NCBI GenBank assembly: GCA_021613535.1 | Contig: CP075496.1 | Coordinates: forward strand, 2,976,001-3,040,000 | Length of the DNA: 64,000 nucleotides | Origin: Adineta vaga | Taxonomy: Eukaryota > Animalia > Rotifera | Reading direction: 5' to 3' | Shown: positions 12,523-19,635 of the stretch, piece after piece | Layout: each line of letters begins with the position of its first letter | How positions within the stretch are numbered: position 1 is the first letter of the stretch | The notes under the pieces: model-generated | The model's input: only the letters and a program-made list of their open reading frames with translations | Databases searched by the model: none | Told to the model about the DNA's origin: nothing | Made by a program: the position numbers and the translations under genes

Positions 12523-14304
12523 ATGATGGCATGGCATCGTCTACATTGGTGTTTTCGAATGATACGATCAAAAACTGGTCGAATGGTAATTATGTTAATA
12601 TTAACTGTTGGTATAGCAATTGCTGAAATAATCTATGGATTACGAGCACGATCACAATTACTTATTGCCGATGGACTTTTTTCATTTGCTGAAGGTATTG
12701 CATTAGTTGGCTCTTTAATTGCATTACGATATGCAAAAGCTGAACGTTTACATTCGAAAAATACATTTGGGTATGAATGCTATTCTTTTCAATCAATTAA
12801 GAATATAATCATTATTTTTCCTTTGTAAATTTCAGTTGGGCACGTTTAGAAATTCTTGCTGGTTTGTTACAAGAAGTTCTTCTCATATCACTTTCACTTT
12901 CAATTATTGTGGATGCTGTTAATAAATTAATCAATCCACATCATATTGAAGATGCATCAGCAATGATTTTTCTCGGATCAGGTGGATGTATTATTGGTTT
13001 ACTTGGTTTAGTTTTATTTCGTGGTTATCATCATGATCATAATATTGGAAATGAAATCGTTGAACAAAAGAAACATGATTTTGTTCGAAGTGTTTATACA
13101 ACTCTGAGAAATCTTGATATGAATACAGAAACGAATGAACATCCTTTAATTGAGCAGACAAATCTTCCACCTCCTTCATCTATTGTTATTCCTGAACTTG
13201 TTGTTACAGAATCTACTACAAATATTACTACAAGTAGTAATAATAATAATAATAATAATGATCAACAAAAGAAACGTCAATTATCACATGACTTAATTTT
13301 ACCATCATTAAATGATACATATAGAAATTCTTTTATCGCTTCAGAAAAAACGGAAACGGTTAAAGAAGAACGCATTAGTGATACGAGTGAACAGCAATTA
13401 CGTGTACCCGATCGGATATCAGTCGAATTTACACGTATGAGAAGTCGAAGTGGCGATTCGGTGATGTCATCAACATTTGCACTTAATCAAGTTGAACCCG
13501 ATCTAGAAGATGATTTTCAAAAATCGCGTGTTTTTGCAACATTACATGCACTTTCATTACATTCATTGGTAAACAGACAAACATAACATTTTTTTTTTAA
13601 ATTTCATCTAGTAAACCTTCTTATCTATTTCTATATGTAGGCTGTTCTTCTGGAATCATTAATAGTATTATTTTCCGGTTTATTAAATAATTTTATTCCA
13701 AATAAAGATAAGAATGGTCTCCCTATTAATGTATGGTTAAAATATATTGATCCCTCCTTAACATTAGTCATGGTCGTTATAATTGCTATTAAAGCTATTC
13801 CTGTTATTTGGTCACTTGGTAACATTCTTGTTGAAGCTGTTCCATCTGGTATCAATACACGGCAATTAATTCAAACGATAATGAAAACAATCCCAGAAAT
13901 ACGTGCTGTACATAGTGTACATGTATGGAGGTAAATAACTGACTTGTTTTATGTTTTCTTTTCTTCACATATTGATATATTTTAGAGCAACAGCTCGGGA
14001 TGTTTTTGCAACTTTACATGTTGTTTGTGACGAAGATTTATCTTTAAGTACATGTACGGATTTATTTGGTCGTCAGTTACAACGAATCTTTGAAACACAT
14101 TGTATACGTCATTTTACATTACAATATGAGTATATTGAACCAGGTGGTGATATAAATCAATGTGCGTATGGTACGCGTCGACGACATCGAGGTCACCAAT
14201 CGACTTCGGAAAATAATGATAATGTAACGATTCAAACACATATTGATTTACATGTCAACTCACTAAAGACAGATGTTACTGATTTATTACGTCGATCTGT
14301 TTAA
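12523..14304 (+). CDS. Cation diffusion facilitator, ZnT1/ZnT10-like (SLC30A), 4 exons
   Basis: KNTFGWARLEILAGL across the first splice, YIDPSLTLVMV, ILVEAVPSGI, VHSVHVW, ATLHV and HFTLQYE motifs of CDF TM and dimerisation domains. Confidence 0.85.
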
Positions 14305-15719
14305 ATCTGAATGGATATGTATGTTTTTTCTTTCTCTCTCTATTTGTTCTTGTTCTTGTGATATCCTTATTTGTTTTCTTACAAATCATTCCAAATCTTG
14401 TTGTTCTTCTGTTTCTTTTTTATGATTTTTTTTCTACATATTCTCTATATTTTTTTTTCTTCGAAATTTATAGATAGTCATTAATTAATGAAAAGAAAAT
14501 ATTCTTATTCAAATATTACCGGTGAGCAAGAGAGAGAGAAAAACTAAAAACGCAGAATATTCGATGTGCTTTTTATATTCTTAATAAATATTTATTCCTT
14601 TCTCTGGAATAGGAAATATTTATTTGTTAAAAAAGAATAACAATAATGTCAATCAATGAAATGAAACAGAACATAACTTATCTTGAATACATAACTGATT
14701 TCCATTCTGAAAAGAAAAATAGTTCCAGATGTGAAGTTTTTCCATTCTATACTCACCAAATGACAGACAATGGATTATTCATCGACAGTTTACTTTAATA
14801 TTCTAATCAATGATGATATTTGTGAAGATCGAAAAGCCCAAGAGATGAAATGAAGATTCTCTAAGGAATATTTTCTTAAATCGAAGAATTTTGAATTGAT
14901 TATTATCAATAGAATAACATTTCCTTTGTGAATTAAGATATCATAAAAATAATTATCCAATATATATTATCTTTATGCATTTCAGCGGAAAAAAGCGGAC
15001 TCGTCAGTTTAGATACTAATCAATCAATGTACCTAGACAGATATACACTTGATTAAAAATGGTAATAATACATTTGATTAGTAACGGTCATGTTGATTTA
15101 CATTAAAATTGTTTCGTAATGAGAGATGAAACACATATGATTATTGTTTTATTTCAAATTTTACATGTTACTATAGTAATGGCATGAAATAAAGTTATCA
15201 CTTAATTATATATCTATGCGTGATGAAATTATATTCTTACATAGTTAAGTTATTATTAGTAGAGAATCAAAGTAACGAATGATAAGTCTCGTAACTAATT
15301 ACTGTTGAAAGATGAATAGATAAGTTGAACGATGTCAGATTTGATAATAACTATAAGAATATATTGCAGTCAAGCAGTTTCATTGTTTATCGATGAATTA
15401 GAATTAGTAGAGTTTGACATATCGATTGTTTTTACTCGGAAAAATTATAAATTGGTCTCAGAGAAAATAGTAATCTTCTCATCTAAATTTATAAATGAAT
15501 AATTTTCATCGAGTATTTGAACAAAACTGAATTGTTTAATTTTATTTGTGTTTTTTTTGTTAAATAAACGTTATTAATCGTTTATGAATATTTCTTTCTT
15601 TTTTCAAATTTCTTCTTTCATATTCGATCGAATCATATGAAATCATAACAACAATAATAATAAATGAAAACAAATTTGGAGGATATTGTTCTCGTTGATA
15701 CTGTTGTTGTTGGTGCTTT

Positions 15720-16448
15720 TTAACGATATCGTCGAAGACTGAGTTGTTGACGACGTTTCCAGCATGTTCGACGTGATCCACCGGTAGCAAGTGAATAACG
15801 ATGACCATGACCAAGTCCACGAGATTTTCTTCCAGCCGATGTTAAACCACGTAATTCACGATGTTTCTTATTTGATCTACAAATCCAGTTAATACGTGCA
15901 TCACGTCGAATACCTAAAATTTTGAAAAAGAATTTATATTTGATGTTCATTTGTTTCTTTCCTACCTTTATGACATGGATCAATAAGGATAACTTCATAG
16001 AATTTGAATGTCGCATCTTGAGCAATCCAGTAAGAATTAAGTACACGTAATGTTGGACAACGACGGCCAACACGTTCTTCAGCAACGGACTGTAATGAAC
16101 GTTGAAATTTCAATTGATTGATACCTTGATGTTTTGGTTTACCATAAACTTGACCTTTTGGTACTGGTTTCTTTCGTGAACCACGTCGGACACGTACACG
16201 ATAGATAACCTAGATTGAAAAAATCCATATGTATAATATCTTAAGTGAAAAGAAAGATTGTGTTTATTTACGTAGCCAGCTTTAGCTTTATAACCAACGC
16301 GTCGAGCCTTTTCTGGTCGTGTTGATTTTGGTGCACGATGAATAGCAGCTAATTGTCGATAATGCCATGTACGTATACGAAAAACAAAGCGCATGACATC
16401 ACTTTGTTTTTTTCTATAAAGTTCTTGAAGATATTTATATGCACCCAT
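15720..16448 (-). CDS. RPL15: 60S ribosomal protein L15 (eL15), 3 coding exons
   Basis: [21 protein letters not shown] start and [19 protein letters not shown]...LSLRRYR end are diagnostic. Confidence 0.98.
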
Positions 16449-16509
16449 TGTGGTAGTTTATCAATCTAGAAGAAATTAATAGAAGATAAATTTATGAAGA
16501 CAAAAATAT

Positions 16510-16830
16510 TCATTCATGAAGAAATTTGGCTAAAGTAAGCCATTGAACACTACGAGCTATACAATCATTTTTTGATGTTGAACAATCCAAATTAAAATAT
16601 GTTAGCTTATCGAATGAAGATACAATATCTGATGATTTTGTTAAAATACCAATATAATCATTAGGAATAGAAAGTTCTTCGCCATTTAATGGACGACCAC
16701 GAAATGATGCGTCTAATTTATTATTATTATTAATTTGAATTGAATCTGTAAAATGTCGTTTAATATCACTTGTAACCGTGGATGAAATATCAATCGAAAA
16801 GGGCATTGAATATACATTTGAAGACATCAT
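16510..16830 (-). CDS. RNASEH2C: Ribonuclease H2 subunit C, intronless
   Basis: ASFRGRPLNGEELSIPNDYIG, FDKLTYFNLD and QWLTLAKFLH match the RNase H2 subunit C signature. Confidence 0.85.
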   Translation of the reverse strand: MMSSNVYSMPFSIDISSTVTSDIKRHFTDSIQINNNNKLDASFRGRPLNGEELSIPNDYIGILTKSSDIVSSFDKLTYFNLDCSTSKNDCIARSVQWLTLAKFLHE

Positions 16831-16904
16831 GATAAAATATTGATTTTCTTTCTTTCGTCTTTTATCTACAATAGAAACAAAAACATTATTAATATTATTA
16901 TTAT

Positions 16905-17288
16905 CTAATCAGAAAATTGAGTTAATTTTTCAAGATATTCTACAAGAAGATTTTCATCACAATATTGTCGTAAAATGTTTGATGGTACAAATTCATAATC
17001 ATCACAGAGATCATATTCTATCAGATATAATAATTCATCAGTTGAATTTAAACGTTTCATTCCATGAATTTGTTTTAATTTATAACCACGTTCAATACCA
17101 TAAGTTATTGATTTTGGTTCAGTTAGAACAAGAATTGGTGCGCGATGTCTAATCGATGTTGAATTGAGACGAGTAGAAGACGATTTATTATTGCTATTGG
17201 TTGATTTGGAACGTTTTGGTGCAATTACAGATTCGATTTTAACATCATCATCCGAAAGAATGATAATATCTTCACACGATTCAGTCAT
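16905..17288 (-). CDS. HP1-like chromoshadow-domain-only protein
   Basis: C-terminal GIERGYKLKQIHGM...ELLYLIEYDLCDDYEFVPSNILRQYCDENLLVEYLEKL aligns by eye to the HP1 chromoshadow domain. First ATG at 17288 (track ORF begins at a TTG). N-terminal IIILSDDD is SIM-like. Confidence 0.7.
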   Translation of the reverse strand: MTESCEDIIILSDDDVKIESVIAPKRSKSTNSNNKSSSTRLNSTSIRHRAPILVLTEPKSITYGIERGYKLKQIHGMKRLNSTDELLYLIEYDLCDDYEFVPSNILRQYCDENLLVEYLEKLTQFSD

Positions 17289-17374
17289 TTCATTTGATTC
17301 GTTTTCTGTCTTCTTCTTGTGCCTTTCTTCTACTTGACAATATCGATACGCAAAGAAATAAACAATCGAGAACT

Positions 17375-17386
17375 TCAATGGACTAT
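17375..17386 (-). promoter_or_regulatory. Shared 12-mer ATAGTCCATTGA (minus strand) upstream of the RPL15-containing cluster
   Basis: Identical 12-mer at 54806-54817 upstream of RPS3 in the same orientation. Confidence 0.35.
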
Positions 17387-18465
17387 TTCCATAAATTAAC
17401 AGTTAGAATTATTTTGAAAATGAATTTTAGAATGAAAAGAAAAGAACTTCATTCTATATCCTAAATAAAATTCATTATTAAAAATCTTGTTTTATTATTA
17501 CTGTTCAAAATAGAATTTTATTTTACATTCAGAAAACAAAATCATGCGTTCGAAAGAGGACGCTAGTATCTGAATGACACTAAACGAGTAATTAAAAAAC
17601 CTTTGCAAAACATGATTTTCTACATAACAATTCATAGATTTACTTTGTCTAATAGGAAAACAAATTGTTTGAATATTTCTTTTTAACTATTCATATGTGC
17701 GATTTTTTCCGAGACATTTTTTATCTGATGCTAATATTTTTCACGAGCCTTATTGTCATATTTCCAGTACCTGCCATACACATTTCCGTTCTCTAATTCT
17801 CTATGGATTGGTATATTGAATTTGTCGCGGAGATCATATAGTTACGAGAAAAAAACAGAAACATAAGGCAAAGAAGAAGAAAAAAGTAAGTCTCATTATA
17901 CGCTCGCTCCTCTAATAAGGCAAACAAATGTCTAACTCAATGTTATTTTTCCAAAACTACAATCAGGCAATCTATTGAAAACCGGTAGTTGTATTCAATT
18001 TATTATTTACTCATACGGTCGTTTTCTTTCTTTCTCCCTTTTTATTCCATGTATCAATGTAATGATTATATTTTCAAAAAGCTTTTTATTTATTGATAAT
18101 GCATGTTATTCACAAGGTAGACAAAAGAGTGATGTGTTCCCATTATTGTATTCTTTCAATGAGCATGTCGTTCAAACATGTAAGATCTTCACGATAGGAG
18201 TAAAAGGGAGAAGAAAAAAAATTTTTCTAGAAAAATTAAATTATCTTCACTATTTTTATTTATTTCCTTTCTGCTTTTTTTCCTTCTCTTTTCTCTTCAC
18301 ATCTTAATTCTTTTAGAATAAATGAATATATATATCTTGAAGACACGAGTCAAGCAATTTTAAAAATAAATATCCAACGTTCTTCTTCCGAGTATTTTTC
18401 CACTTGATTACAAAATTATTTATCTAAACAATATAGCAAAACAAATGGTCGATAGTTAAGATACA

Positions 18466-18819
18466 ATGCTAATAAATATGCGCAATGACAGCTATCATCG
18501 TCTTCAAAACGAGTCGACATTAACAATCTTATGTGCAAATATGTCTAATAATAGTACATATGAAAACTGTACCAATATTATTGCATCTCCAACTTCAACG
18601 AACAATTTACCATTGAATTCAATTGTTATTATACTTGTTTTATCGATTTTATCTTTATGTGGTGTTTGTTTTATGATTTTCGGACCATTACAAAGATCTG
18701 AAGCTTATAAACGTGTAGAAAACTTTACATTTGGTCGTCATCCAATCTTTAATGTTGATCATCGTGAAGCATCCACTCCCACACGTTTCGATGAAACAAT
18801 GGATTTTGCAGATGAATAA
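18466..18819 (+). CDS. Small single-pass membrane protein (N-glycosylation sequons, TM helix, short cytoplasmic tail)
   Basis: NNST/NCT sequons then hydrophobic IVIILVLSILSLCGVCFMIF; true start may be ATG 18541. Confidence 0.6.
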   Translation: MLINMRNDSYHRLQNESTLTILCANMSNNSTYENCTNIIASPTSTNNLPLNSIVIILVLSILSLCGVCFMIFGPLQRSEAYKRVENFTFGRHPIFNVDHREASTPTRFDETMDFADE

Positions 18820-18897
18820 AGATATTTTTCTCGTTAAAATATTCTTTACATCGTTTTAGTTATTTTGTTATGAAATAAAGAAAACAAACAAACGAAT

Positions 18898-19635
18898 TTA
18901 TTTTTGAAAAAATCGATCAGTTAAATATTGACGACAATAATCTGATTCCAATTCACACTTAGCCACAGAAATATCTTTTTGTATTGCCATAGTCAAATCA
19001 TCTAAACAAATATATGAGGAGTACGTTTATATCAAAAGAACTTAGTATCAAATAAATTCTTATTTATTCATCTCTACTTCTTTCATCAACATATTTCAAT
19101 TAACAGAATATCAACTCGGCTATGAAAATATAATCGAATCATTCTAAATGAATAAGTCATCGAAAATAATCTTACTTATATTTTGGAATGTTTTCATTGG
19201 ACGTATTTTTCCCAGAAGAATAATTTTCATTTTTTCACCATAAAAATCATTTGAAAATTGATGCATTATATGTGTTTCCTAAGATCATAGTCAAATATAA
19301 AAAAAATTCATTTATTTTTTAATTCTTTACTATAGTTTTCTTTTCATTATTATAGAATGGATTCGTTCCAATACTTGTAACCATTTTATAAATTTCATGA
19401 TCTGTTTTAGTTAACAATTGTGCCCATCCATAATAAACACCTTCATCAATTGATGACGGTAATTTGTTTACAGTTGCTTCATCTAAATTAGCTGAAAAGA
19501 ATCAAATATAATTCTTTCTTTAACTCGTTCACTTGCCTCTATTTCAATACCTGTTGGACAGCCAAGTTCTTTACTTCCACGTCCAAAACCACGTACAATT
19601 GTTCCAAGAGTACAATAGGGTAAAGAAGATTTCAT
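18898..19635 (-). CDS. RFK: Riboflavin kinase, 4 exons (absent from ORF track)
   Basis: Spliced translation MKSSLPYCTLGTIVRGFGRGSKELGCPTANL...GVYYGWA...MVTSIGTNPFYNN..ETHIMHQF..DFYGE...LGKIRP...AIQKDI. Confidence 0.92.

Follow-up and report, generated by a model that had tools for sequence, protein, structure and literature searches.

The stretch of Adineta vaga DNA analyzed here, referred to as the window, is 64,000 nt in length and corresponds to positions 2976001-3040000 of contig C4; the genome searched consists of six contigs with a total of 100.8 Mb. Three genes lie close together on its minus strand, namely, ORF1, RNASEH2C (here referred to as RNH2C), and RPL15 (eL15), and their positions are listed in Table 1. 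An earlier note on this DNA had described three unrelated same-strand genes separated by just 74 and 61 nt, and its coordinates were reproduced exactly. Each spacer was said to end in a pyrimidine-AG acceptor (16866-7 and 16466-7), and both are indeed present after pyrimidine tracts, with the sequence contexts ttctattgtAG^ataaaag, 37 nt past the ORF1 stop codon, and tttcttctAG^attgata, 42 nt past the RNH2C stop codon (the caret marks the acceptor boundary); these measured distances agree with the previous estimate of about 40 nt from each stop codon to the next acceptor. The canonical AATAAA hexamer, previously reported as missing, is absent from both window spacers. A fusion protein of RNH2C and RPL15, which an in-frame stop codon had been said to bar, is impossible because a TAA is located in frame 12-10 nt ahead of the RPL15 ATG and because the two genes are in different frames. 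An Rfam scan of positions 14000-19500 returned zero matches.

Table 1. Features of the ORF1-RNH2C-RPL15 locus (positions within the window)
Feature	Position	Strand	Remarks
Conserved promoter block (predicted), ~70 nt	17333-17400	-	upstream of ORF1
ORF1 (cistron 1, putative 127-aa chromoshadow-only protein)	ATG 17288, stop 16907-16905 (16905-17288)	-	
Spacer 1, 74 nt	16831-16904	-	AT-rich part, pyrimidine tract, AG 16867-16866, then A-rich 35-nt leader
RNASEH2C (RNH2C, cistron 2, 106 aa)	ATG 16830, second ATG 16827, stop 16512-16510	-	PF08615
Spacer 2, 61 nt	16449-16509	-	pyrimidine tract, AG 16467-16466, then 17-nt leader with in-frame TAA
RPL15 exon 1	16272-16448	-	PF00827, E 1e-20; donor GT 16271-16270
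RPL15 exon 2	15966-16209	-	PF00827, E 1.7e-37; acceptor AG 16211-16210; donor GT 15965-15964
RPL15 exon 3, including stop codon	15720-15913	-	PF00827, E 2.5e-15; acceptor AG 15915-15914

The identities proposed previously for the RNASEH2C and RPL15 products hold. The RNH2C protein matches PF08615 at 48.6 bits (cutoff, 20.8 bits; E, 1.3e-12), a whole-genome search showed that the gene is present as a single copy, and its orthologues begin at the second ATG (16827). RPL15 comprises 204 codons over three exons, and when the exons were matched one by one to PF00827 as separate queries, all three were recognized, covering positions 1-58, 59-139, and 141-190 of the 191 positions of this family. The ORF1 protein of the window alone has no Pfam match; 9 of its 13 orthologues match PF01393 (Chromo_shadow; best E, 1.2e-4), and a profile of the 13 orthologues retrieved only HP1 chromoshadow chains from the PDB, the best being 3p7j (E, 0.011). 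The predicted AlphaFold structure, with a pLDDT of ~80 across residues ~60-125, can be assigned to the chromoshadow fold (three strands and C-terminal helices), as the top Foldseek matches with this model are all chromoshadow domains (HP1), with TM scores of 0.84-0.87 and rmsd values of 1.2-1.8 Å over ~62 residues. These comparisons and the structural model support the view that ORF1 encodes a chromoshadow-only protein with a C-terminal domain, in line with the label "chromoshadow protein" in the earlier note. ORF1 is a single-copy gene without a close second copy in the genome, and its nearest paralogue is an HP1-like gene on contig C2 in which both a chromodomain and a chromoshadow domain are present. 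At its N terminus, ORF1 reads IIILSDDD, and the orthologues have an invariant I-I-x-L-S-D followed by acidic residues, a stretch that may represent a SUMO-interaction motif.

For the window RNH2C protein, an exact look-up gave no entry. When RNH2C was used as the query in a word-index protein search, 35 relatives were obtained, of which the named ones all belong to Adineta or Rotaria, and ~20 bdelloid loci were collected through RNH2C by contig look-ups and one metagenome scan. The gene order, which the earlier note had singled out for comparison, was unchanged: ORF1, RNH2C, and RPL15 follow each other in this order, on the same strand and directly adjoining, at every bdelloid-type locus with RNH2C, including that of Rotaria socialis (GCA_905331015, locus L022) and those of the diverged lineages L023 and L049, with 60-62% RNH2C identity. 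Since the arrangement is kept in all ~20 of these loci, it is more than chance. The spacers remain short throughout, at 33 to ~95 nt for spacer 1 and 52-96 nt for spacer 2, and in one species spacer 1 is just 33 nt long, with a distance of 20 nt from the stop codon to the acceptor. Both spacers in all loci contain a pyrimidine tract followed by (C/T)AG^AT(A/T)AA; the spacer 1 acceptor consists of a Y-tract with CAG^ATAAA or TAG^ATAAA in all loci, and the spacer 2 acceptor is conserved as TAG^ATT(G/A)A. An AATAAA is located 19-28 nt before the RPL15 acceptor in most other species; neither the window nor L020, the locus most closely related to it, has this hexamer there, and among the compared loci, no species has it close to the ORF1 terminus. 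Two short contigs, L024 (455 nt) and L025 (483 nt), were considered as cDNAs and rejected, as both proved to be pieces of genomic DNA in which the two spacers are present.

At the distant RNH2C loci L043-L048, no match to RPL15 or ORF1 was obtained, and around one RPL15 locus of Didymodactylos carnosus, ORF1 and RNH2C are missing over 4 kb, as is the promoter block (described below). Because this D. carnosus locus is without the upstream genes and the block, the unit is perhaps not universal in bdelloids; from the loci compared, it is established for Adineta, Rotaria, and several further bdelloids and not for all bdelloids. The D. carnosus RPL15 locus keeps the same cation-efflux neighbor.

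When the loci were compared, the sole conserved noncoding block of the unit was found upstream of ORF1. In the window, this predicted promoter block contains a first box, GTTAATTTATGGAAATAGTCCATT, with a palindromic core and followed by GAAGTT; a second, TATA-like box, TTGTTTATTTC; and a third, initiator-like box, ATCGATATTGTCAAG. Across loci it reads GTTAAnTnATGGAAATAATCCATT, AAGTT, TTGTTTATTT, and ATCRATATTGTCAA, and it is present in all 16 loci that reach far enough. Transcription is predicted to start at ~17330-17350. A second RPL15 gene is located on contig C1, where both flanks are collinear with the window over a region that is ~1 kb shorter and lacks ORF1 and RNH2C. When the block sequences of 8 other species were combined into a PWM (shuffle control: maximum, 11.5 bits; mean, -2.2 bits; SD, 3.6 bits), the window scored 52 bits, and a site 170 nt upstream of the ATG of the stand-alone C1 RPL15 gene scored 27 bits. 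As the block is shared with this duplicate, the promoter upstream of ORF1 is probably the RPL15 promoter, the one in use where both upstream genes are missing. Among arguments from DNA alone, the shared block is the strongest for transcription of the window RPL15 gene from upstream of ORF1.

The palindrome ATGGAAATAATCCAT was also considered as a general ribosomal-protein promoter motif. It has 301 matches genome-wide versus 103 in the control, an enrichment of ~3-fold; this candidate was rejected, as several of the best matches inspected fall in apparent coding sequence. The coding-sequence matches include NGNNPL, which resembles ankyrin repeats.

Trans-splicing to a spliced leader (SL) has been known in bdelloids since 2005. 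According to the passage of PMC1925144 that cites Pouchkina-Stantcheva and Tunnacliffe 2005, >50% of bdelloid mRNAs bear the SL. A single 23-nt SL is reported for bdelloids (PMC3795323), and the genome was searched with that published sequence alone. The SL exon ..CTTATTACAACTTACCAAGAG was found in 42 copies, and 10 of the 10 loci inspected run on into a GTAAAT donor. Together with an SL-headed RPL15 mRNA in a relative (see below), this agrees with the statement in the earlier note that bdelloids carry out SL trans-splicing. A GTCAAG upstream of ORF1 was considered as an SL acceptor and rejected, since several species have GTCAAT or GTCAAA at this site and RNA contigs start upstream of GTCAAG.

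RNA evidence comes from a related bdelloid, here referred to as species X (RNH2C protein P0034), represented in JGI samples 3300002344 and 3300002345. Its RPL15 protein was read from a natural intron-less contig, L050, and exactly the same protein is also encoded by two further contigs, L054 and L055. The latter two start with CAACTTACCAAGAG^ATAAACG and CTTACCAAGAG^ATAAACG, respectively, where the letters ahead of the caret are the 3' portion of the SL; after it come a leader of 21 nt and RPL15 without introns. As these contigs are SL headed and intron-less, the two samples are RNA derived. Past RPL15, the contigs are similar by eye to the sequence that follows the C1 copy, and they are therefore probably mRNAs that were made from the stand-alone RPL15 duplicate by SL trans-splicing.

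All three cistrons were found together on the 1,634-nt contig L050 (also recovered as L042) from the same JGI RNA sample (3300002344/5). In comparison with the near-identical genomic contig L049, one 60-nt RPL15 intron (GTAAGT...TTTAG) is missing from L050, and the two otherwise differ at 10 bases. The Logan contig L052 opens with a reverse-complement Illumina adapter that is fused to a point ~45 nt ahead of the ORF1 start codon, and such a fixed junction points to a genuine RNA 5' end located between promoter boxes 2 and 3; L053 begins ~20 nt downstream of the L052 start, L050 begins 7 nt upstream of it, and both L052 and L053 read through both spacers into RPL15. Transcription in species X thus begins shortly ahead of ORF1 and runs without a break over the two spacers, with the caveat that the contigs may join overlapping RNAs.

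In three RNA-type datasets, contigs pass straight through both acceptors, and none of the contigs recovered is SL headed at the RNH2C acceptor or at the acceptor of the operon RPL15 gene. Graph assemblers may trim short SL tips. The absence of the SL from contigs is hence weak evidence. At the RPL15 acceptor, L050 reads AGAG^ATCAG, and L049, L051, L052, and L053 read CTAG^ATCAG. The SL ends in these same four bases, AGAG, and the L050 reading may thus stem from a mixture with SL-joined reads; such a consensus hybrid would be much likelier than a double substitution at just this site, and we regard it as a hint only. It is of note that the SL of the paralogue is joined at AG^ATAAAC, a context also seen at the conserved acceptors of the operon.

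Taken together, we consider it probable that this locus is a bdelloid-wide three-cistron operon that has one promoter and is resolved by the SL in the tunicate style. RNA polymerase II would start at a single promoter, the block at 17333-17400, near 17330-17350, and would transcribe ORF1, RNASEH2C, and RPL15 as one precursor, from which the RPL15 introns would be removed in cis. The RNH2C and RPL15 mRNAs would gain capped 5' ends when the 23-nt SL is trans-spliced onto 16866/7 and 16466/7, giving resolved mRNAs in which the SL tip ...ACTTACCAAGAG is joined at 16865 (RNH2C) and 16465 (RPL15), and the upstream mRNAs would be cut and polyadenylated within the ~40 nt between the stop codon and the next acceptor. 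That a single promoter ahead of ORF1 drives polycistronic transcription appears well supported, indirectly for A. vaga. Co-transcription was shown in the relative; we infer SL addition at both acceptors, the place where the upstream mRNAs would end, and the extension of this scheme to A. vaga. With respect to the earlier note, which had proposed a polycistronic transcript, the gene order, the block found only upstream of ORF1, and the tricistronic contig in the relative speak in its favor; the SL was seen at neither acceptor.

Three independent, closely packed genes would be an alternative that we regard as unlikely. In this case, the promoters of RNH2C and RPL15 would be located inside the upstream coding sequences, the multigene contigs would be read-through products or assembly joins, and the acceptors would serve in outron removal by the SL. 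Read-through transcripts do occur in compact genomes, and the contigs may come from several overlapping RNAs instead of a single molecule. However, the spacer 1 of 33 nt with just 20 nt from stop to acceptor in one species is difficult to reconcile with this scenario, order and spacing have been stable over deep bdelloid divergence, and the sole conserved noncoding block is upstream of ORF1 and is the same as that of the stand-alone RPL15 duplicate.

It is considerably less probable that the transcript functions as a mature polycistronic mRNA whose downstream ORFs are translated by reinitiation or internal entry, with no SL resolution. Such an mRNA would account for the recovery of RNH2C solely in unresolved contigs in three RNA datasets, but ribosomes would encounter many internal AUGs in ORF1 and RNH2C, RPL15 is needed in large amounts, the conserved acceptors would be left purposeless, and the paralogous RPL15 mRNA is SL trans-spliced. 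Least probable of all, and in our opinion barely tenable, are nested genes, in which a tiny noncoding 5' exon of RPL15 would be cis-spliced to 16466/7, with ORF1 and RNH2C intronic or produced via alternative 3' splice-site or poly(A) choice: in the window, L020, Rotaria, and the C1 duplicate, the pyrimidine-rich box is followed by a GTATCGA or GTATCAA that is readable as a donor, but the GT is missing in several species (GATCGAA in species X; AACAA or TTCAT in others), the RNA contigs L050, L052, and L053 follow the genomic sequence across this candidate donor, and the stand-alone RPL15 mRNA bears the SL and no cis exon, so that the cis-spliced 5' exon named in the earlier note as the refuting case was looked for and has neither a conserved donor nor RNA-contig support.

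Returning to the SL-resolved operon, four wider propositions follow, and whether all of them hold together seems to us evenly balanced: that bdelloids possess genuine operons that are ancient, tunicate-like, and served by one SL; that upstream 3' ends are formed ~20-40 nt from the next trans-splice acceptor; that the locus is a natural experiment in which, following genome duplication in bdelloids, the operon was retained in one copy while the other lost the upstream cistrons and kept the promoter, outron, and SL acceptor; and that the sole RNase H2C gene is expressed only as a passenger of a ribosomal-protein promoter.

In a table published in 2008, operons in rotifers were listed as "not determined" (PMC2481426), and a 2025 paper loosely places rotifers among the lineages with trans-splicing and operonic transcription, citing older work only (PMC12460157). 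No description of a rotifer operon was found in the literature searched, which had many subscription papers outside its scope. A well-anchored rotifer example would extend the small set of operon-bearing animals by one phylum, and it bears on the question of whether operons arise wherever SL trans-splicing exists. The locus offers a conserved gene order, a mapped promoter block, cistron-spanning RNA in a relative, and a duplicate without the upstream genes, and it is a small, defined locus in which the coupling of polyadenylation and trans-splicing across ~40 nt could be studied. According to one proposal, operons allow a faster recovery from growth arrest (Zaslaver 2011, as it is cited in PMC12460157), which is an interesting idea for desiccation-tolerant animals. 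For genome annotation, small downstream cistrons like RNH2C may be missed or merged.

Among known systems, the closest parallel is provided by the tunicates Ciona intestinalis and Oikopleura dioica, in which one SL serves monocistronic and operon genes, unrelated genes are placed together, and intercistronic DNA is very short, being absent in Ciona and 23-30 nt long in Oikopleura (PMC1488885). Ribosomal protein genes of Oikopleura also tend to be trans-spliced or located in operons preferentially. The evidence follows the same scheme as that of Satou et al., who relied on unresolved multicistron cDNA, the SL on the downstream gene, and genomic structure; here we infer the downstream SL. In contrast to the bdelloids, tunicates belong to another phylum and use an unrelated SL, and the bdelloid gap from stop codon to acceptor is 20-75 nt. 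Caenorhabditis elegans operons likewise have a polycistronic precursor made from one promoter, with upstream 3' end formation coupled to downstream trans-splicing, as would hold for the bdelloid unit; they also contain a mix of housekeeping genes, have been conserved for long periods, and include a minor SL1 type without intercistronic sequence. They differ in their dedicated SL2 and in their ~100-nt spacers with a U-rich element, the bdelloid spacers being shorter, and by this comparison the bdelloid spacing appears to resemble that of tunicate operons more than that of the C. elegans SL2 type. The chaetognath Paraspadella gotoi, a gnathiferan relative of rotifers, has 18% of its genes in SL-resolved operons, among which ribosomal, ubiquitin, and proteasome genes are overrepresented (PMC12460157). 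Unlike bdelloids, chaetognaths use several SLs; they have no gene order in common with rotifers, and the origins of the operons are treated as independent (PMC12460157).

The RNA-derived contig of species X, a related bdelloid, carries all three ORFs (L050, identical to L042), and comparison of its RPL15 acceptor (positions 790-800) with that of the genomic contig of the same species (L049, 3745-3750) showed that positions -4 to -1 read AGAG in L050 versus CTAG in four other contigs of this species. Since the spliced leader ends in AGAG, L050 may be an assembly hybrid that includes reads joined to the leader. The public Logan contig of species X (L052) opens with an Illumina adapter in reverse complement (TCAGACGTGTGCTCTTCCGATCT, positions 1-23), which is joined to rotifer sequence. 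The adapter is a contaminant of the contig, yet it is useful here for marking where an RNA has a fixed 5' end.

The C1 region with the stand-alone RPL15 duplicate is collinear with the window and approximately 1 kb shorter, with ORF1 and RNH2C both being absent from it (L013, L018). The duplicate has the same two introns as the window RPL15 gene, a TGTAG/TCTAG acceptor approximately 20 to 30 nt ahead of its ATG, and the same promoter block as the window unit, located 170 nt upstream of the ATG. At the Didymodactylos carnosus RPL15 locus (L056/L057, 3900-4000), the same cation efflux gene is the downstream neighbor, and an acceptor-like site, gttttAG|atttataaaa, is present 56 nt ahead of the RPL15 ATG; ORF1, RNH2C, and the promoter block were not found upstream of this gene. 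RPL15 genes of bdelloids do not all have the same introns: two are present in the window, in Rotaria, and at most loci, whereas species X (L049/L050) and L039 to L041 are missing intron 2, and D. carnosus (L056) is without intron 1 but has retained intron 2.

Genome-wide, 17-mers related to the core of the promoter block are enriched approximately 3 times. Among the best other genome matches inspected, several lie within apparently coding sequence, and these coding-like matches are NGNNPL-like, resembling ankyrin repeats.

The start codon of ORF1 is overlapped by a two-codon upstream ORF (ATG AAA TGA; window 17286-17293, minus strand), which is also present in the closest relative (L020, 135-142) and is not present in Rotaria. 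Residues 7 to 16 of ORF1 (window 16908-17288, minus strand) comprise IIxLSD, which is invariant in 13 of 13 orthologues, followed by acidic residues; judged by eye, this N-terminal stretch resembles a SUMO interaction motif with a putatively phosphorylatable serine. The nearest ORF1 paralogue is the HP1-like gene on C2, which shares 32% identity across the chromoshadow part and combines a chromodomain, an acidic hinge, and a chromoshadow domain.

Positions of the RPL15 duplicate, the HP1-like gene, and the promoter core
Feature	Position	Strand	Remark
Stand-alone RPL15 duplicate	G000:C1:9386577-9387600		L013, L018
HP1-like gene	L015 1465-2070 = G000:C2 about 5292552-5293157	- (in L015)	
Promoter core ATGGAAATAGTCCAT	Window 17381-17392	-	Near-perfect palindrome
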